From NCBI GenBank assembly GCA_000708835.1, contig DF237098.1:54133-118132 (forward strand): a stretch of 64,000 nucleotides of DNA, in the 5' to 3' direction. Made by a program: the position numbers and the translations under genes. The DNA comes from Klebsormidium nitens. Its lineage: Eukaryota; Plantae; Klebsormidiophyceae. This document shows positions 52,272 through 64,000 of the stretch, piece after piece. The first letter of the stretch is position 1, and each line of letters opens with the position of its first letter. Under the pieces are notes generated by a model, which was not told where the DNA came from, made no database searches, and saw only the letters and a list, made by a program, of their open reading frames with translations.

Positions 52272-55200
52272 ATGGCCGCCCTCCGTCCTGATGGCACAAT
52301 GGCCCCCGCACAGGGTCGCAAACCACTCGTCCCAATCACCGAAACCCCTTCCCAGGGGGGTCCCGCAAACCTCGCAGCAGAAACCCCCTCCGCTAGCGAC
52401 GTCCAAGACCACTTCTCTCAAGAGATGCCAGATCGTCTGAGCAAGTACTATGAGCGGTCGCCAAGCCTGGCGCCGTCTTACTTCAAGAGGGGGGGAGTTC
52501 AAACGGGTTTGGGGGAGGTTAACGGTGGAGTTAGCGGAGATCCTGAGTACTATAGGAGCCTGGGCAAGGCGGCGCAAGCGGCGTTGATCCACCTGATCAT
52601 GAAGTATCATGAGGTGAGGTGCGGCTGCTGAACAGGGTTAAGAAGCTGGTTAAGGATGGAATGGAATTGTGAGTCTGGGAGTGCACTTGATGTGCCTGGT
52701 TGGCGTTTGGATCGACATGATCGATGGTTGTTCCAGGACCGACGCTCAAAATGTTGCTCAGACGACAGCTTCGATGCTAGAAACTATGACTTGGGTTGCT
52801 TACAGAAAGCCTGAGCGGCAAGATTGCTTACAGAAAGCCTGAGCGGCAACATGCGCCACAAAACCAACATTCAAACAAAGGGGCACAAGCCATGCAGGAG
52901 AGTGCACTTACAATAACCATGCATGCTTTACAGGAAACTTCTCGACTGCGCTCGCTGTTGAGAAACCCACCACAAGACCCTTTCACTCCTTTGATCAGCA
53001 AGCTGAAGGGAGGCTTCAACAGGTTTCACAATTGCCGGTGGTGTTCTCGGATGGGTCAGATCAAATTTTGTTTAGTTAGTAAGCGGCCAACGTCCAGCAC
53101 AGTCAATTTTGGCGAGAAGTTTGCGGGCCATCAAGTTTGGGAATGCATGCAGCGGTTCTAACCCCAAACCTAACCCCTTTTGCAGACCCTCCTTCAAAAA
53201 GGGCTGACGGCCGAGGCTGAGAAAATTTCGAGCTCTTTGAAGGCTCTGAGAGATGACCCTATCGGCGACGCAAATAAGGAACTTACGGGGATGGATCTCT
53301 TGATGAAGGACGGTCTTCTGCAATACATGCTCAAGATCGGACCCTTGTTGCCGACACTCCCCGCTCAGGTCCGTTCTCCTGCTTCTTGCCAAGCAGGCCC
53401 TTACTGCTCTTGGCGTCGCATTTGTCAACCCACTTTTCAGCTTTATGATGCGGTCCGCTATAACGATCTACCGAACGCCTTTGTATTCTCAATCAGAGGG
53501 CTCAATTTTAGGAACCAAGCTCCACCTATCGTACCATCAGAAGATCCACCCCCCGACTAAATGGCGCCAACAAGCCGCCGTTCAGGCCCGTGCCAAAAAG
53601 TTACGTTGAGATGCCTACAGCCGGTGACATGTTGTCAACAGTAAAGCTCCATTTCGTACCTAAGACATAAATGACGCCTAAAGGTCCTGTGTCAAATCGG
53701 CGTCTTTCAGTCGCTCACGACATAAATGGTGCTGTTTTGATGCCAAACAAGTGCGTCAATCGGCATCCATCTGGTGGGCACCTTTCTGGCCCATCAAGAG
53801 TACAAATCTTTCGGGGGGGTGAATTTCTGATGACCAGATCGCAAGTTTCATACATGAGGTTCTCTCTTGGCAACTGGGATTTGTGTGCATCAGTATTGAG
53901 ATGAGGGGAAGGAGACAAAAACGACGGATAATTGAGTACTTGTGTTTGGTGACATCAGGTTTTTTGGTTCTATGTCCTGGCAACCGTGGATATTCCCCCC
54001 ATCAATGGGACATGAGATTGGACGGTTATGCTGTAAAAAGACGAGTATGCTGAAAGCCGAGAAAATGAGGAGACTCTCGCAACACGCGCTCCGTGGCCGA
54101 CCCTTCTCTCTCTGTTTCTGTCCTTAAACTTATTATATTCGTTGTGAAGCTCCATTGCGTTTACCAGATAGAGGTGAGGAGCGAGTAAACAGAGGTGTGT
54201 CGGGCCCTTGAGACTGGCAAATGAAAAAGAATCTTTCTTCGTCACGGATCATATCCTTCAGCTGTTCAACGATAGGGACAAGTGAGAGCGGGTGATTAAG
54301 TTATGAGGAACTCCGCTCCACTGCTGCAACTCCGTTGGCCTTCTTCCCAAAACAGCAGATTATGTGATCTATCCAGTACAGTAGTCTCGATTTCATCTTG
54401 AGTGACGGTTATGTTTATTGTGGTCACGCCCCTGGGACGGGTCGAGCCCATAGTACGGTGGTTTGGATGAGTACTGGTGCGGAGCATGTTGACCTTGGGT
54501 TTAGGGTTGTCGTTTGCACTTCAATCGAGTCCGGGGAATTGATTCAACTAGCTCCACGTAGGCCTAACTCAACGTTCAAGACATACACTCATCAAACTTT
54601 CTCCCGCTAACCAGGTGGTCACCTTCAAGAACCTGAGCTACTCATCCAAGGTGACGTTCACAAAGGGGACGTACGAAACTGTCGGCACTCAGGTGGGCAG
54701 TAATTTCGACTCTGGCTACTTCTCCCCACTCGGTATGCGACTCGAAACCGTTTCCAACTATCAAGATGAGGTCTGAGCCGTCAAAGCGCAGCGCAGCCCT
54801 TTACTAGTCTTGTATCGACCTCTGGCGAGATGAATACTCCTTGGTTTCATTTTGGGCCCGGCCCATCTCCTAGTCTGTTTTGCAGTTCCATAGGTGTTCC
54901 AAAGGTGGCAATATGCAAAGTATTTCGCTCGACGAGCCCGGTTATGGGATTTCGATGATGTCAGCTAATGCTTCCGTATCAAAAACTGGCTTTCTCCGCC
55001 CATCCGTTATTCGTCTTTCATTGAAACCCTGAAACTGAGGTGATCAGATCGGCATCGTCGATAACGCTGATAGTTCATCCTACGTCTCCCCATGTCCCCA
55101 GGTAATTGGTCTCGGGACCCAGTTCGTCACGAAGAAGACCACAGGTGACGTGGACATCCTCAAAAACGTCACGGGCTACGTCATGCCCGGGACGATGACC

Positions 55201-58200
55201 CTCGTTCTGGGCGGGCCTGGCTCCGGCAAGTCGACTCTGCAAAGTCTGCTATCGGGGATGCCCCACAAGGACAAAACAACGACGATCAAGGGCGAGGTAC
55301 GCGGCTTCTCGGAAACTTTATTTTTGAGGATCTTGTTGAGGGCTTTTAGAGTCTATGTTTGCAGGTTCTAACATCATGACTTAGCGAATCCCGCTCTATG
55401 CACACACTGCTTGCGGGGATGCCACACAAAGATAAGGCGACCACGATAAAGGGCAAGGTAGGCAAAGGGAACTTCGGGAATTTGTTTGTGTTTTCGCTCC
55501 ACTTTTGCTTATCGGACCTCAAAAGTCCACATTTGCAGACCCTATGCTTAGGGCTTGAAAAAGAAGAAAGCACATCGCTGACAGCGCCGTATTCAACAGC
55601 CTTTCTGAATTCGCAATCCCGGGGACGCAAGCGGACTTCCGCTCTGTCTGCTTCACGAACATCTCATTCCCTTTAAGAACTAGAGCGATGTCATTCTGGC
55701 CCGCAGGCCCTGTCCCCTCCAAGCAAATCATCGGCGGCCCGTCTGAGAGCGGCGACTTCGCTAACCGGAAGCTCGCCGCTGCCCTGCTTCACTTGAGGAC
55801 GTCCTTTCTAGAAAGTGTATGGACACAAGAAAACAAGTAGTCGGAGGTTTGATTCTTGCAGGGTCCCTTGATGCGGAAGCACGTCGGTGGGGGTCCGTTC
55901 CAAGGTGCCAACTTCGACGTCCGAAAAGTCCCCCCTCTAGTGGAAAAGCAGGCCGTTCTATGAGCTTTTTGCAAGAACAGTTTGCAACTAAGAATGAAGC
56001 GGAGACTTTTTTTGCAGGTTTCTTACAACGGTAAGCATGTCACCAATCGCCCATCTTTAAGCTCTGACATTCCAATTCAGATTCCGTCGCTTATCCAATA
56101 GCCCGATCGGTTCACTCGTTTTCTTTACAAACTAGAGCGACGTCTTTTCTTCGCAGGTTCGGTACAACGGCAAGCACGTCATCGGCGGCCCGTCTGAGAG
56201 CGCCGGCTTCGCCGTCAGGAAACTCGCCGCGCTAGTTAAACAATCGGACGTCCATTTCGCGGCCTTGAGCGTGCGCGAGACGCTCGAGTTTGCGCGCAGT
56301 TGCACGCAAGTCTGGACCTTTGAGGAGATGTTCCGGCGCAGCCCCGAATTGCGGGAGGTTTTTGGCGCGGTCCTCGCGCAGGGGAAGGATCCGAAGCTGG
56401 AGAACGTGATCAACATTCTGGGTCTCAGGTAGGAAATCCAGCTTCCTTTTCTTTCGTGATCCTCTCCAAAATGTTTGTAGTCGGATATTTCAGGTTCCAG
56501 TTTTGCGTAGGGTTGGGGTCAAATGATCGACATTCTGGCCTCAGGTAGGGTCGCTGACTGTCTCTCCCTTTTTCCTTCTTTTCTGAGAAGTGTTTGAACA
56601 CTATGCATGTGTCTGGTTGTACTCCGCACAAATATGGGGTGCGAAGTGATCAGAATTCTGGGTCTCAGGTAGGAAAGACAGCTGTCTTTGTAATCTTCAG
56701 TTTTTCGTTGATTCTTAGTAAGACTGCGGAGTTGGAATAGCATCCGCCAAAATGTCATGCGCCCTGCGCCCGTACCCCTACTAACCACCAACTTAATCCC
56801 GTCCAGTCCCGTCCCGTCCCCCTGGTGCTCATCTCTATATACACATCATGCAGTGTAGACTTGCAGGCGGACCGAACAACTGTGAAACCATCGAGAATAG
56901 CAGCCCCAATCAAATGCTCTTCCTGAAACGGGAACTTTCTGGATGTCGCATGTGTGGTGAGTGTGTTGCCCTTTGTTGGAAACTAGGCAGCAGACCCCGT
57001 CCTGCAAAGACGTACAAATCACAAGCTAAGGCTTGCAGACTGTCCTTACCTTCAGAAATTTCTGCGTCGCCCTTTTCGCAAACTTCTGTTGACGTTTTCT
57101 ATTCAACTTTCAGGCGCGTTCTGAACATGCCGGTGGGCGGTCCAATGACTCCCCCCACGCTCACCGAAGACGAGCGGCGCCGCGTTTCCGCCGCGGAAAT
57201 GGTCGCCGGAACGTACGTCCTCCTCTTCCTAGACGCCTTTGCCACAGGGGTCGACGCGGCGACCGCATATGACATCGCGAGCGGGCTACGGGTTCTGGCC
57301 CGGGTTAGGCAGCTGGGAATCGTGGCGAACATCGTTAATCCGCCCCCGGAGGTTTTCGGGTTGTTTGATCGGGTTATACTGCTGGACCGGGGGAGGGTGG
57401 TTTACCAAGGGCCGAGGGCGGATGCGGTTCCTCACTTCGAGTCGCTCGGGTGAGGATTGTGCGTCTCTACTCCAAGTCTTTACATATCTCGGCATTTCAG
57501 CTTGGATACTTTGCACGTCAGGGGAGTAAATTCTTCTGCAAATGTTTACGAGTCACCATTTTCCGGTGATTTGAGACTTTGTTGTCCACGTATCTAGCGC
57601 GAATGGATCATGCAGGCGTCAGAAAAGCGTTGTTTAAGACCTCCTTGGCATGCTCAGGGTCCTGGACAGCGTCCCTGCTCGTCCTCGTTGCCCTTCTGAA
57701 CCGTCCCGGAAACCCCTTTTCATGTAATTAAACCCGATCTCTCAGATGATCAGTTTCCAGGGCGCTCAGCTAGTACTCTAGTACCGCTGACCTAAGCAAG
57801 GGCAACCATGTTCTCGACCTTGACCCAATCCTCAAATTGATCGAAGTTACTTCCTTCGGGCGGCTGTTTGGCCCCAGTGCTGACTCCAGACTAAACCCCT
57901 CCTGCAGGTACATCAAACCCGACTTCCTGGACATAACCGAGTTTCTCCAGGAGGTAACTTCCCCTGACGGTGCCCAGTGGTTGTCCCCCGGACACTCCCC
58001 TCTCGACCTCGGGGGGTTCGTTTCCGCCTATGAAGCTACCCCCCACTACGCCGACATTTTGCGGGTGGTTAACTCCGCCGATCCCCCTCACGTTCTCTCC
58101 GTCAAGGCCCCCAAACCGCTTGGGTTAAATCTCCTGGCTCGAAACGGCGTACCAGCAATCGCGCGGATCGAAGCGAGTAGTTCGCTGACGTCAGCGGAGC

Positions 58201-61200
58201 AGACGGTCCACTTCACCGGGGCCGTGAAGGAGGGTGACGTCATCACGGCGGTGTCTGCTCCCGAGGGGGGGCTGGTTTACCTGGCGGGGAAGGGGGGGGA
58301 AGCGAGCGTGGAGGAGCTCGAGGCGCGGCTTCACGAGGCGGCGGATCCAGTCCGGTTGCAACTAGAGCGGGCGACCCCAGAGGTGCGATTTGCTCATTCG
58401 CCTCGTTCCGGAGTTTCAAAAACAGAGGTCCCGGAGTCTGAGAGCGAAGACGTGGCGAGCTTGACATGATCTTGTTCACTTCTTCCGTCTTCGACGTGTG
58501 ACACTTTCACTTCCCACTATTTGTAGAGCAACGTCTCCTGATTTTGAGTGGCGTCATCGTTTCTTGCTTCAGTTGCGGTCAAGTGTAAGTAACTTCAGCT
58601 GACGTCACAGGTACTGCAAGATCATCGCAACATTTTGTGCGTGTCCGCAGGGAACTAGTTGCTTTCGGGTCTCTTACGTCACAGGAAGCGACGTGGGTCA
58701 ATCCAGACCCCACTTTGAAACCGATATTCTTTCTTTTGGTAGCGCTTTTTTTCTTCCCGTTCGCTTCCCTTCCGCTTGTTGCAGTTTCGGGCCCCCTCCA
58801 GATGTCGTAGCGCCTCCTCCCAGATGCATTTCTTAGTTGCCATTCTTCCAGTCTGACGTTTCCCGGATTGGTTCCTTCGCTTCTTCCTCTACCTCCGCCT
58901 TCTGTGCATTTAAAGGCAGCTCCAGTTCCGTTCCGACAGCGGCAGAGTGCGATTTCGTCAAGCGGAATTGGTTCTGCATAGATTCTTGCGTCTGTGTTGG
59001 TAGCGGCAAAGTCCGGTCCCTTCGGCGAGTTTCGTTTCGAACTTTCTTCGCGATTCTGGTTCCACTCCGGCAACGGCAAAGTCCGCTTTCGTTTTGCGGG
59101 GTTGGATTTTCTGCGCAGTTCCGGTTCCATCCTGGCAGCGGCAGATACCGTTTTCGTCCGGCGTCGTTCGTTTTACGCAAGTAATGACACTCAGATAAGC
59201 ATAATCTTGCCCTGAACCGACTTTTATCAAAGCCCTGATTCCCTTCATCCTTAAAAAGCCTTATACACCCTTAAAAGCCTTATACACCCTTAAAAGCCTT
59301 ATACACCCTTAAAAAGCCTTATGCATAACACCCAAAACCCAAAAAGTTGTTTCCTCTTCGTCGCAGCCTGACGACAAGGACATCATCAATGAGCAGTTCA
59401 CGCAGGAATATTCGCTGCCCTTTTGGGCGGAGTACCGTTTCCTGTTCGACCGGGCCTGGAAGGCGCAACTGCGCGGGAAGCTCCTGCTCTATTTCCGAGC
59501 GTTCCAGGTAGCACCCCACTTCTAGTAGTTCCTTCTTTGGTATGCCATCTATCTGATGGACCCCTCTGGAAGCTTTACACTTCTCGACAAGGTGGCCCTT
59601 TTCACTATCTTTCTGCGCATGCGCACAGTGCCAGAGTCCCTCTTCCGGGAGATAGTGTTCATCGACTCTAATAAATTATCCTTTCATACAAAGATCGGGA
59701 CGGTGGATCATTCCCTCCCGCTTTGGCTGCAATGCTCGTTGCAGGGTTGCAGCTTTCCTTACGGCGATGTTATTATAGAAGGTAATTCTTATGGATGTTA
59801 ACCAAAGTAGAAGTTTGTGTTCCTTTGGATCACACTCATTTGGCTTTGACTAGGGAGCTCTCTTCATCAGATTGGAAACAGTTTTCGTAGAAAACTGTTC
59901 AACCTGTTGCTCTTTACCTTGACGTCCTTCAGTATGGTATCTGCCTGACGCTTCCAAGAGCATATCTTCCGAAGTTTCAGGTTACCTTCATGTCCCATCC
60001 CGATACTCAACGCAACAAACCCTTTGCAATCGAACCGTCTCCTTACACCTTTCAAATTACGTTCATCTCCCTTCAAGTTTTTGCTGGAACCATATTCTGT
60101 CTACGGATCCGCCTTCACTTACATAACATTTTTCTGGGATTTGGTCACCTCTAACTACGTATCAACGGCTTTTCCCCAGGAATGATCCCAGCCCCTCTTT
60201 CAAAAGATTCGTTCTTATCGCTTTGCAGTTGAGCTTCATTTCCCTTCTGGTATCTCGACGGCTCCGGCGCTTCGCTTCAGTGAACCTCCTCGCTTCTTTT
60301 TTGATCAGATTCAGAGTAGAACTCATCTTCTGTTCAATGGTTTCTCTTACGTTTTAGATCACTTCTCTCTCTCTATTCAGATCACGTTCATCTCCCCTTT
60401 GTGGGGACCATCTTCTGGCAACTACGATTGCGCCGACTTCTCTCGCGAAAGAACCTCCTCGCTTCTATTTCCCACAGCTTCATTAGACATATCGAGTTCT
60501 GATCAAAGTCTTCTCTCACGAATCATTTTATTTCCTTCTCTTGTTTCAGAGCACGTTCCTCTCCCTTTTCGTGGGGACCATCTTCTGGCAACTCGACGAC
60601 TCCGCCGACTTCTCTCGCGATTGAACCTCCTCGCTTCTTTCTCCCACAGCTTCATTGAAAAAGTCAAGGTTCTGATCAAAGTCTTCTCTCTCGAATCATT
60701 TCATTTCCTTTTCTCGTTTCAGATCACGTTCATCTCCCTTTTCGTGGGGACCATCTTCTGGCAACTGAACGAGTCCGCCGACTTTGCCCATATGAACACG
60801 CGCCGCGGAGTCGGTTTCCTCTCCCTCATGTCAACTTTCCTGTGCAACGCCATCCAACTTCCCGGTCAACTGGCAGACCGGGCGGTTTTCTACAAGCAAC
60901 AGGGCGCCCGGTTCTACCGGCCCGGTTCGTACCTGCTCGCGAGCGTTGCGGCCAACTTCCCCTTCTCGTGCCTGGAGGTGCGGCCGGACATCCTTGGATC
61001 TTGGCTTTGGGGTTTTGTTAGCCTCTGAGGGTTTTCCAAATTCTTTATCTTGACGAAATATCAAAAGTGGATTCCTCGGAGGTACGGTGTGATTCCTAAA
61101 GCTGTAGCGTTGTGGACAACTCCCCCTTCTCGAGCTTCGAGGTATATCTCTTTGAATTGAGCGCAGCATGCGTTAGAAACAGAAACCTTCACCACAGAAA

Positions 61201-64000
61201 ACTCTACTGATGTTGGGTTAACCAAAGAAAACTCAGCCACAGAACGCTCCACCACAGAAAACTCCATCAGTGTTGGGTTTACCACAGAAAGCTCAACCGC
61301 AGAAAGCTCCACAACCGAGAGGTCCACCAGTGTTGGGTTAACCACAGAAAGCTCCCAACCCAACACTTGAGAGACTATTCTCAAAGCCACCTGCTTTGCA
61401 CCCGTATCCGCCATAGACCTCCACACTAACCTCACCTGTCCGAAGGTGGAGAGCTTACTTTTCCCTAACGCTTACACTCCATGAAATCGATCTATGTCTA
61501 TGTAAAGCGGTGTTCAACTTTGTCCACTTCTGTTCCGCCACAAAAGCGTTTACGGGAGAAGGTGACGTGCGCTTGTACCTTTGCCCCGATATGAGTGAGA
61601 TACGCGAGCCCCTAGTTCCAATTCATCTAGCTTGTGAAGGACTCAAATCAGTCGCTGAAAGTTGGATGGAGCAGACAAGTCACCAATATCGTCTCTCACC
61701 CGTAGCTTTCCCTGGTCCGCCATAAAGCGGTTTTGTGATTGAGAATCGGAGCTCTCTGCCAGCGTTCATTAGAAAAGTTTCATTCTTGGAGTCACAAACA
61801 CCGACAAATGTCTCAGAGAATCCGATCCGGAAACATCATAGCCTTTTCGCGCAGAAACATCATAGCCTTTTCGCGCAGGCTCTCACGTATGGCGTGATCG
61901 TCTACTTCATGACGGGCTTGTCTCTGCACGAGGGCAGCGGTCACTTTTGGCTGTTCCTGCTAGTCATCTTCCTTAACGTGCAACAAGGGGCGCTCCTCGT
62001 CCGCTGGCTCAGTTCGTTCGCACCTGCAATGGAAACGGCCGCAGCCTTGCAAGGTGAAGCTTGAGAAATGGGTTTGGGTCCAGGTTTGGCTTTAAGTTTT
62101 GGCTAATCATGCTGGTCAGTCTCCCAAACGTCCAACAAGGAACGCTTCTTGTCCGCTGGCTCAGTTCTTTCGCACCGGCCTTGGAAACGGCGGCAGCCTT
62201 GCAAGGTAAAGTCTAGTTAGAAAACACAAGACCTGGGTTTGAAACCAGGTTTAGTTTTGAAGATTTGGCTGTTTCTATTGGTCAATTTTCTGAAACCCCG
62301 ACAGGGGGGGCTTCTGGCTCTCCGCTGGCTCATTCCTTTGCACCGGCCATAGAAACAGCGGCAGCCTTGCAAGGTGACATTGATCTGATGTGGGCTTTGC
62401 TAATGTTGACACATTGGGGCCTCTCGAATATTCAGACTGTGACTTTCGCCGCTTTGATAATAAAAGTGCTTGATCCGGTAAGGGAAGTATCTTGACACTG
62501 CCAAGCACTCCGTTTTCTCACACCGTTAATCTCCCACTTGGCAGTGCCTCCAATCCATTCGAAGGACGCGCCCTGGGATATGGACTGATTTTCCGACTGT
62601 GCAGGAATCTTCATCGTGATTTTTGTGGCGTTTGCTGGCTTCCTCGTGCCTCGCAACAAGATACCCGACTGGTGGTGAGTATTTATGAAGTCGCTTTTCT
62701 GCTACTCTCTGGCCTATGTTTCCGGGATCTGCACGAGAAGCACTTTGGGAAGAAACCGGTAATCAGTGTCTTAGAACTAGTGACTGCGTTATCTGCTCAA
62801 GGAAGTTTTCTTTTCGCTTGGAAAATCCTCCTCGTAAGTCCCAAACGCTTCGGTCGCTTTCCAAGGCTGGTCGCTTCGGACCAAATAAGCCGATCAAGAG
62901 TGTCGATTAGCTTCCATTAGCGCACTTCAGTAAGCAGAGCCTCTCACTTCAAAATGTGAACGATGGAGTCCCGAACTTGCGTTGGGCTTGACACCATAAC
63001 CACTCCCCGCTTATTGCGCAGGATCTGGGCGTATTGGATGGACCCGCTCCAGTGGGGCATCTCGATCATCATGATAAACGAGATGCGCTCAGCGACGTAT
63101 AAGCAGCCGTGCGCCAGCTTTACGCCCCAGTACTTATTGGCCCATACGCTGACGGGGCCCTGCCGCCAGGCCCCAGACCGCGAACTGGGCTTCGCTTATC
63201 TCGTCCAGTGGCAACTGAAAACAAGCTGGTAAGACGTTTTTTTCTCTTGTTTGGCCCCATTTTGCATTCACCAGCCAACAGGTAGTAGTAAGACTGAGAT
63301 TGTGGGATATCACGGTCGTAAAATGTGACTAATTGTGCTTCTTGTTTTCTGCTGAGGCGAACCTCAGAAATTGGCTCTCTTAGCTCCCGTCTAGAAGGCA
63401 ACGTAGACTAGTGTACCGCGACTGGGAATCAGTCAATCCGTCAAGCTCGGACACGACGACGTTGTGCTTCTCAGTTCCGCTTTCGGGAAGCCGAAAAGCG
63501 ACTTCCTTGATTGGCTCATTTGCAAATTCAATACAGCTCTTAGATTGAGATTGAGCGGGACATCTCAGGCAGGCGGTCATTGAGCTCAGCAGAAATGATT
63601 TCTGTTTTGTCAATTATTTTACGGAATGTGTATGTCCTCCTAGGTACTGGGTCCCTATCGGCGTCGTCGTATACCTGACATGGTGCGCCCTATGGCTCGG
63701 CCTGTCCTACGTGGCACTCTCCGAGATCCGCCACGTGGTGGTCCCCAAAGTCCGCCCTTTGGCGGCCCGTAAGGGCTCCGCAGCGCCTGAGGTTAAGGCG
63801 GGAAACCCGGAGAAAGAGACCGCGACAACGCACGATGCTGAGAAGGGCGCCAATATCAAGGTAACCGACCTTCCTTCCTTTTCAATTTTCAAAGACTCTT
63901 TTGCTCAAATTTCCTGGCCAGGTACTTCTTATGAAGCTTTGATTTATATGGATCTGGGGAAAAGGCAGGAAATCCGGATGAAGAGACCGGAGCAACGCAC
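52272..64000 (+). CDS. PDR-type ABCG transporter, N-terminal part only (NBD1, PDZ-like insert, TMD1, start of linker); continues beyond the window
   Basis: Exons include [46 protein letters not shown] (Walker A); VRYNGK...KQSDVHFAALSVRETLEFARSC; GPRADAVPHFESLG / YIKPDFLDITEFLQEVTS; ITFISLFVGTIFWQ...RAVFYKQQGARFYRPGSY; YGVIVYFMTGL; FAGFLVPRNKIPDWW / IWAYWMDPLQWGISIIMINEM. This is the NBD-then-TMD order of ABCG/PDR. The start ATG and the full-length status are inferred. Confidence 0.88.
58840..59150. repeat. Degenerate intronic repeats built on CGGCA(A/G)CGGCA(A/G)A / GGTTCC motifs
   Basis: ccagttccgttccgacagcggcagag, gtagcggcaaagtccg, ggttccactccggcaacggcaaagtccg and ggttccatcctggcagcggcaga recur. 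The apparent ORFs here are repeat translations. Confidence 0.55.
59252..59322. repeat. 19-bp tandem repeat AAAAGCCTTATACACCCTT, about 3.5 copies, in an ABCG intron
   Basis: Directly visible tandem copies. Confidence 0.9.
61185..61358. repeat. Intronic minisatellite of ACCACAGAAA(A/G)CTC-type monomers with a recurring GTTGGGTT(A/T)ACC higher-order unit
   Basis: Repeated accacagaaaactc, accacagaaagctc and gtgttgggttaaccac strings. Confidence 0.85.

Follow-up and report, generated by a model that had tools for sequence, protein, structure and literature searches.

The locus described here raises the question of whether a full-size ABCG/PDR-like transporter can carry a PDZ domain inside its own chain and, if it can, what such a domain might be for. 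The gene lies on a 64,000-nucleotide stretch of Klebsormidium nitens DNA (contig DF237098.1; we refer to this whole stretch as the window, with positions counted from its first letter). A preliminary description of the window had placed an in-frame extra segment of about 95 amino acids between the first nucleotide-binding domain (NBD1) and the first transmembrane domain (TMD1) of the predicted protein. The segment is present at that place. On the strength of the structural models presented below, it is a genuine PDZ domain of canonical topology, set into the linker between NBD1 and the helix that precedes TMD1 (the pre-TMD1, or elbow, helix), and the combination is a new domain architecture made from two known parts.

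The modelled fold of the insert

The insert was modelled with AlphaFold2 from two alignments of the family. With four sequences, one model reached a predicted local distance difference test score (pLDDT) of 78.5 and a predicted template modelling score (pTM) of 0.72, the four other models being weaker (pLDDT 60-67); with eight sequences the pLDDT rose to 81.1, and four of the five models scored at least 78. Both runs agree on the secondary structure (insert residues 4-10 for strand βA, 16-21 for βB, 24-30 for βC, 54-59 for βD, 65-67 for βE, 77-86 for helix αB, and 91-97 for βF). The predicted order, β-β-β-(α)-β-β-α-β, is that of the six-strand, two-helix PDZ fold (βA-βB-βC-αA-βD-βE-αB-βF). Confidence is lowest in the connection between βC and βD (residues 31-53; pLDDT about 65), which is where canonical PDZ domains carry helix αA.

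We compared the model with known structures in several ways. The best 50 Foldseek matches in the PDB are all PDZ entries, and an exhaustive structure comparison with 48,161 representatives, run independently of Foldseek, likewise returned only PDZ domains among its best 50. At rank 2 of the Foldseek search stands chain D of PDB entry 8j5d, the BAM1-LSF1-MDH complex; we take this chain to be LSF1. The full canonical PDZ geometry is kept in the model, with a root mean square deviation (rmsd) below 2 Å to peptide-binding PDZ domains, and the structural alignments run sequentially over residues 1-101, so that the predicted topology is canonical and not permuted. A shape search of the Atlas found eukaryotic PDZ clusters, several of them streptophyte, and no ABC cluster; streptophyte PDZ clusters match the insert at template modelling (TM) scores of 0.70-0.74. 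AlphaFold2, Foldseek and the exhaustive comparison thus agree that the insert models as a PDZ domain, which is what the preliminary description had proposed.

The signal that can be read from the sequence by itself is weak. All of the motifs on which that proposal had been built (K-x-x-x-P-L-G-L, G-D and R-L-Q-L-E-R) are present in the insert, and a family-profile alignment sets the PLGL loop in register with GLGI of the third PDZ domain of MPDZ, the T-G-x-V-x-x-G-D stretch with the matching motif of the GRIP, MPDZ and PDLIM2 PDZ domains, and RLQLER of βF with the last strand (RLQLDR) of the PDLIM2 PDZ domain. All searches were run exon by exon or with relatives of the gene from the databases (introduced below). 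Pfam gave no family at E <= 10 for the PDZ exon, the insert or the NBD1 exon, hence no PDZ match for the window copy, and it gave no PDZ match in four relatives (P0005 to P0008). The window insert also misses the curated threshold for Pfam PDZ families (PF00595/PF17820), and a single copy of the domain in the Mesotaenium relative P0004 scores 17.5 bits where the cut-off is 27. A phmmer search of the PDB with the insert yielded one match, TfuB1, which at E = 0.21 is a chance hit. Such hints as there are agree with one another: the nearest neighbours of the insert in a protein-language-model search are PDZ clusters, the P0004 copy matches Pfam PDZ_6 at E = 0.0034, and a profile of the family finds the PDLIM2 PDZ domain among PDB sequences at E = 0.011 when built from four sequences and at E = 0.0011 when built from eight, with the PDZ domains of MPDZ, GRIP and Scribble next. 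Because standard Pfam models are silent on the window copy and on four of its relatives, annotation pipelines probably miss the domain.

Transcripts, gene structure and the host transporter

Expression of the exon that carries the insert was followed in four public sequencing runs from four studies (two organism labels). The RNA label of these runs is a guess; they are transcripts nevertheless, since the share of sampled words found in them (about 35-40%) matches that of the exons, and since all introns are absent from their contigs. Two contigs, of 4435 and 4448 nucleotides, span all of the listed exons with no differing letter, and further, split contigs also carry the full PDZ exon with no letter changed. 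No contig of the four runs skips this exon, and skipping would break the reading frame, the exon being 475 nucleotides long. The PDZ exon is constitutively spliced into mRNA, and the possibility that the insert is spliced out of the message, which had been named as a potential refutation, is thereby ruled out.

Two further observations concern the assembled transcripts. A G-rich coding stretch of the PDZ exon (58284-58300), in which eight G follow one another, codes for the G-K-G-G-E loop that joins βE to αB, and contigs of two runs break near it, one of them with a loose poly-C end, so that short-read assemblies are fragile at this point. In run X1, a low-depth contig of 249 nucleotides, which departs from the window at two letters, covers 58731-58978 in the intron downstream of the PDZ exon; its source may be unspliced precursor, a repeat copy, or a transcript that is either antisense or unrelated.

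The window holds the 5' half of a multi-exon gene on the + strand, which tblastn with relatives traces from about 52485 to past the end of the window at 64000. Exon edges were read first from the sequence and then confirmed by GT..AG joints in the spliced contigs (Table 1). The insert had been described as contiguous with transporter sequence in one exon. This holds upstream, where the tail of NBD1 shares the exon (base 57908 finishes a Gly codon, and whole codons start at 57909), but not downstream, where the pre-TMD1 helix is encoded by the next exon.

Table 1. Features of the transporter gene around the PDZ insert (positions in the window)
Feature	Position	Strand	Evidence or remark
Walker A exon (NBD1)	55039..55296	+	Position is that of the open frame; G-P-G-S-G-K-S-T; 3' edge 55296 from transcript joint; Pfam ABC_tran 27.2 bits (cut-off 25)
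NBD1 exon	56157-56428	+	GT..AG joints
Exon with C-terminal half of NBD1	57114..57449	+	Transcript joints and translation
Exon with NBD1 tail and whole PDZ insert (PDZ exon)	57908..58382	+	475 nt; both edges are GT..AG joints in four runs
PDZ insert	58080-58382	+	101-aa translation, in frame after NBD1 tail
Modelled PDZ-fold domain	58089..58370	+	Insert residues 4-97
P-L-G-L	58116..58127	+	X-hydrophobic-G-hydrophobic loop at start of βB; equivalent of the 'GLGF' carboxylate-binding loop
T-G-x-V-x-x-G-D-V-I-x-A-V-S	58215..58256	+	End of αA region and strand βD; T46, G52, D53 invariant
G-D	58233-58238	+	G52 and D53 of the motif in the row above
R-L-Q-L-E-R	58353..58370	+	Strand βF; conservation highest within the insert; R92, L93, Q94, R97 invariant
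GT..AG intron, PDZ exon to pre-TMD1 exon	58383..59366	+	984 nt; skipped in contigs of all four runs
Exon of pre-TMD1 (elbow) helix	59367..59507	+	Joints and translation
First TMD1 exon found by Pfam	60723..60977	+	ABC2_membrane 45.8 bits (cut-off 26.9); joint
Next TMD1 exon	61879..62055	+	ABC2_membrane 29.3 bits; 3' edge approximate

In the host gene the nucleotide-binding domain precedes the transmembrane domain, the ABC_tran match being followed on the same strand by the two ABC2_membrane matches; between the two TMD1 exons the transcript contigs pass from 60978 into letters located at 61880. Three relatives (P0005, P0007 and P0008; 1534-1656 amino acids) have two ABC_tran and two ABC2_membrane stretches each in Pfam, with weak PDR_assoc matches in P0005 and P0007, and P0004, P0005 and P0007 share 44-49% identity with the exon that encodes the C-terminal half of NBD1. 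The Pfam matches of the exons together with the two-halved relatives lead us to class the window gene as a probable full-size ABCG of the PDR kind. The contigs of about 4.4 kb and the same relatives suggest that it has two NBD-TMD halves; the gene leaves the window at 64000. NBD1 had been called degenerate, correctly so: the Walker A motif is intact, D-A stands in place of D-E after Walker B, with A at the position of the catalytic E, and the stretch has no canonical signature motif. This is the asymmetric first ATP site typical of PDRs. P0004 is divergent in this region too.

Several introns of the gene contain partial, diverged copies of exons, here called echoes (55720-55779, 60381-60439, 60552-60611, 62097-62207 and 62318-62377), which are 84-93% identical to the neighbouring NBD1 exon at 56157-56428 and to the two TMD1 exons. 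The transcript contigs contain none of the echoes, a search for an intronic echo of the PDZ exon found nothing, and the closest relative of the gene (L001) matches the window at the echo sites too. Comparison of translations shows that an intronic open reading frame (ORF) at 55398-55676 begins by nearly repeating the last part of the Walker A exon (..GMPHKDK.TTIKG..); this ORF looks like another echo. In the intron just upstream of the pre-TMD1 exon, a tandem repeat with a unit of about 20 nucleotides (CCTTAAAAGCCTTATACAC-like) occupies 59240-59330 in about four copies.

Distribution and conservation among relatives

Eight sequences carry the insert at the same site. Besides the window gene, these are a genomic contig of a related alga (L001; the closest relative, 87% identical in amino acids and alike in exon pattern), a more distant second locus from the same sample (L002), two genes of Mesotaenium endlicherianum (P0004 and P0005), a Joint Genome Institute (JGI) environmental sequence (P0006; a cluster of 95 member sequences, with an uninterrupted 958-codon ORF on two contigs of about 7 kb), a gene of the liverwort Calypogeia fissa (P0007), and a gene of the grass Aristida adscensionis on a 5.5-Mb contig (P0008). 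The insert is absent from three chlorophyte full-size ABCGs (P0009 to P0011, from Micractinium, Edaphochlamys and Pleodorina), in which the NBD1 tail runs straight to the pre-TMD1 helix; given these homologues without it, the segment is a true insertion. The architecture is old and common to a streptophyte ABCG clade that extends from algae to land plants.

A HMMER search with the single insert against 1.84 billion representatives recovered three true relatives and one further sequence (P0002), and missed P0005 to P0008; since it passed over known members in this way, statements of absence from other lineages are weak. We set P0002 aside as spurious, because it is a 1376-residue repeat protein with ten weakly matching stretches and, in Pfam, only sub-threshold cadherin-like hints. 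A word search with the exon found one related fragment, P0001 (among candidates limited by length), and a word search with the P0004 insert found P0004 itself only.

The inserts of the distant members are 27-36% identical to that of the window. Seven residues are invariant across all eight (T46, G52, D53, R92, L93, Q94 and R97), the X-hydrophobic-G-hydrophobic loop is kept in six of the eight, from algae to the grass, and the hydrophobic positions of βB and αB are kept. The DNA of the window gene and that of L001 cease to be similar beyond the exon edges, and the ratio of non-synonymous to synonymous substitution (dN/dS) between the two is 0.285 over the insert, as against 0.014 over the NBD1 tail of the same exon. 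These values indicate that the insert is under purifying selection, looser than that on the NBD1 tail.

Two of the relatives differ from the window gene in organization. In the P0004 gene model the PDZ and pre-TMD1 segment is present twice, word for word (residues about 405-530 and the repeat after them), and the end of the second nucleotide-binding domain is truncated; the doubling probably reflects either tandem duplication in the assembly or faulty annotation. The whole P0004 protein scores 25 bits with PDZ_6, against 17.5 for one copy, and P0004 is the only model with a precomputed PDZ family, perhaps because the doubled domain lifts the score. In L002 the NBD1 tail and the PDZ domain lie on separate exons (627-854 and 1162-1533), where the window gene has one.

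With these comparisons in hand we can weigh the most deflationary account of the insert, that it is an artefact (a retained intron, an error in the gene model or a chance PDZ-like pattern). The lack of any Pfam match at E <= 10 for the window copy, and the four weaker models of the first AlphaFold2 run, speak for such an account. It does not sit well with an exon that is spliced in transcripts of four studies, with an insert that is conserved at one site across distant plants and is under purifying selection, or with a second AlphaFold2 run that was consistent in four of its five models, and we consider it very improbable.

A proposed docking role and its relation to known systems

What the domain does is a separate question from what it is. 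In a PDZ domain the first strand lies next to the last, and for this reason such a domain can sit in a linker loop without disturbing the pump. In the window gene it would be placed on the cytosolic side, close to the membrane and beside the degenerate NBD1, and we propose that it is a built-in docking module of the transporter. The groove between βB (which begins with the PLGL loop) and helix αB would take up a short peptide of a partner protein by strand addition, the peptide being either the C-terminal tail or an internal hairpin of that protein, and the recruited partner would place, stabilize or regulate the transporter. A working groove is favoured by the X-hydrophobic-G-hydrophobic loop, preserved in six of the eight members over a very long period, and by the kept hydrophobic positions of βB and αB. 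We give this putative docking in trans close to even odds, and not more.

Several observations weigh against peptide docking in the groove, beginning with the silence of Pfam on the window copy and on P0005 to P0008. Conservation is strongest on βF (RLQLER), a strand pointing away from the canonical groove, and this pattern fits docking of the domain onto the pump better than it fits binding of a ligand. In L001, the closest relative of the window gene, R takes the place of the loop glycine, and in L002 S does. Only three members (the window gene, L001 and P0004) have the K of K-x-x-x-PLGL, P0005 to P0008 having Q or E, and the groove-side positions of αB vary across the family. Non-synonymous evolution of the insert is, moreover, about 20 times faster than that of the adjacent NBD1 tail.

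Most of these observations favour a different role, in which the PDZ fold binds no ligand but serves as a structural or allosteric module that packs through its invariant βF/βA face on NBD1 or the linker and stiffens or tunes the way in which the degenerate ATP site is coupled to TMD1. R92, L93, Q94 and R97, all on βF and outside the groove, are invariant; the loop glycine has been replaced in two of the eight members; the residues that would line the groove on αB, and the basic residue upstream of the loop, are variable; and selection is relaxed relative to NBD1. A mere spacer, however, would need neither an X-hydrophobic-G-hydrophobic loop that persists in six of the eight members, from algae to grass, nor the full canonical geometry that places the model within 2 Å rmsd of peptide-binding PDZ domains. 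We regard a purely structural role as a serious but rather unlikely alternative.

The groove could also hold a peptide of the transporter itself. The C-termini of the full-length relatives end a few residues past the last membrane helix, with a final K or H; such short tails make the transporter's own tail an unlikely PDZ ligand, and we rejected it as a canonical one, a result that also counts against a working peptide groove. An intramolecular switch of another kind would have the groove occupied by the N-terminal extension or a linker of the same protein, released on a signal to give auto-inhibition or auto-activation. The N-terminal extension (150-400 residues) and long linkers, which are conserved in the family, could reach the domain. 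PDZ domains can bind internal hairpins, and the Par-6/Pals1 entry 1x8s is among the structural matches of the insert. With the own C-terminus excluded as a canonical ligand and no candidate internal motif identified, we consider such a switch improbable. Lipid binding was set aside on reading the window insert, in which acidic residues outnumber basic ones.

If the proposed docking in trans is correct, the window gene may belong to an old streptophyte ABCG clade with its own PDZ receptor, in which the tail or hairpin of a partner switches or positions the pump, and which was kept from charophytes to bryophytes and in some grasses but disappeared from most flowering plants; we offer this wider scenario tentatively and think it doubtful as a whole. 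Were it true, the protein would be a ligand-addressed ABC transporter, a form of control that to our knowledge is not known for any ABC family. A bound partner would also point to that partner, and to the placement or regulation of such pumps in algae and bryophytes.

The preliminary description knew of no PDR with an internal PDZ domain, and for plant ABCGs this was borne out in the literature that we searched: a full-text search found no paper that joins PDZ domains and plant ABCGs, only animal work on PDZK1 and ABCG2, although subscription journals are thinly covered by it and an earlier description is possible. Full-size ABCG/PDR proteins (yeast Pdr5 and plant proteins of the ABCG29-43 type) resemble the window gene in the order of NBD and TMD, in the ABC-2 membrane domain and in the degenerate first ATP site. 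At about the position of the insert, the described PDRs have a plain linker and no folded PDZ domain, whereas the window gene has one. Early-diverged full-size ABCGs of the 'V1-Type' have been reported from Chara, Klebsormidium, Physcomitrella, Sphagnum, Selaginella and Amborella, and from no other angiosperm, in a paper that does not mention PDZ domains (Cho et al. 2020; PMC8359288). Their taxon range, by which alone we liken them to the insert carriers, is similar (charophytes, bryophytes, rare in angiosperms), except for the grass gene P0008; either this gene represents a clade separate from V1-Type, or V1-Type survives in some monocots.

Among PDZ domains, those of plant-lineage proteins (LSF1, PDZ-rubredoxin and the streptophyte clusters labelled 'PDZ domain-containing') are similar to the insert in fold. 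These proteins are soluble or plastid and have other partners, unlike the insert in a membrane pump, and the HMMER search with the insert found no sequence-level link between them and the ABCG insert. The concept of an extra cytosolic or periplasmic module that regulates a membrane machine or selects its substrate is shared with the R domain of CFTR and with the PDZ domains of RseP and HtrA/DegP. The R domain is disordered and controlled by phosphorylation; the PDZ domains of RseP (a site-2 protease) and HtrA sit in proteases and are of the circularly permuted bacterial type. We know of no regulatory module of the CFTR R, RseP or HtrA type in an ABCG.

The closest contrast is with the scaffold PDZ domains (for example, Scribble PDZ1, PSD-95/Dlg, MPDZ, NHERF1 PDZ1 and PDLIM2), which are free-standing modules of soluble scaffolds and bind the tails of membrane proteins in trans. 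The window domain has a longer βC-βD region than these, falls below Pfam thresholds and forms part of the transporter chain itself. As a rule, external PDZ scaffolds hold ABC transporters by their tails, and NHERF1 with CFTR and PDZK1 with its transporters are examples of such tail binding in trans; a built-in PDZ domain would reverse this usual relation between scaffold and tail, and would provide a handle on an early-diverging clade of plant ABCGs.

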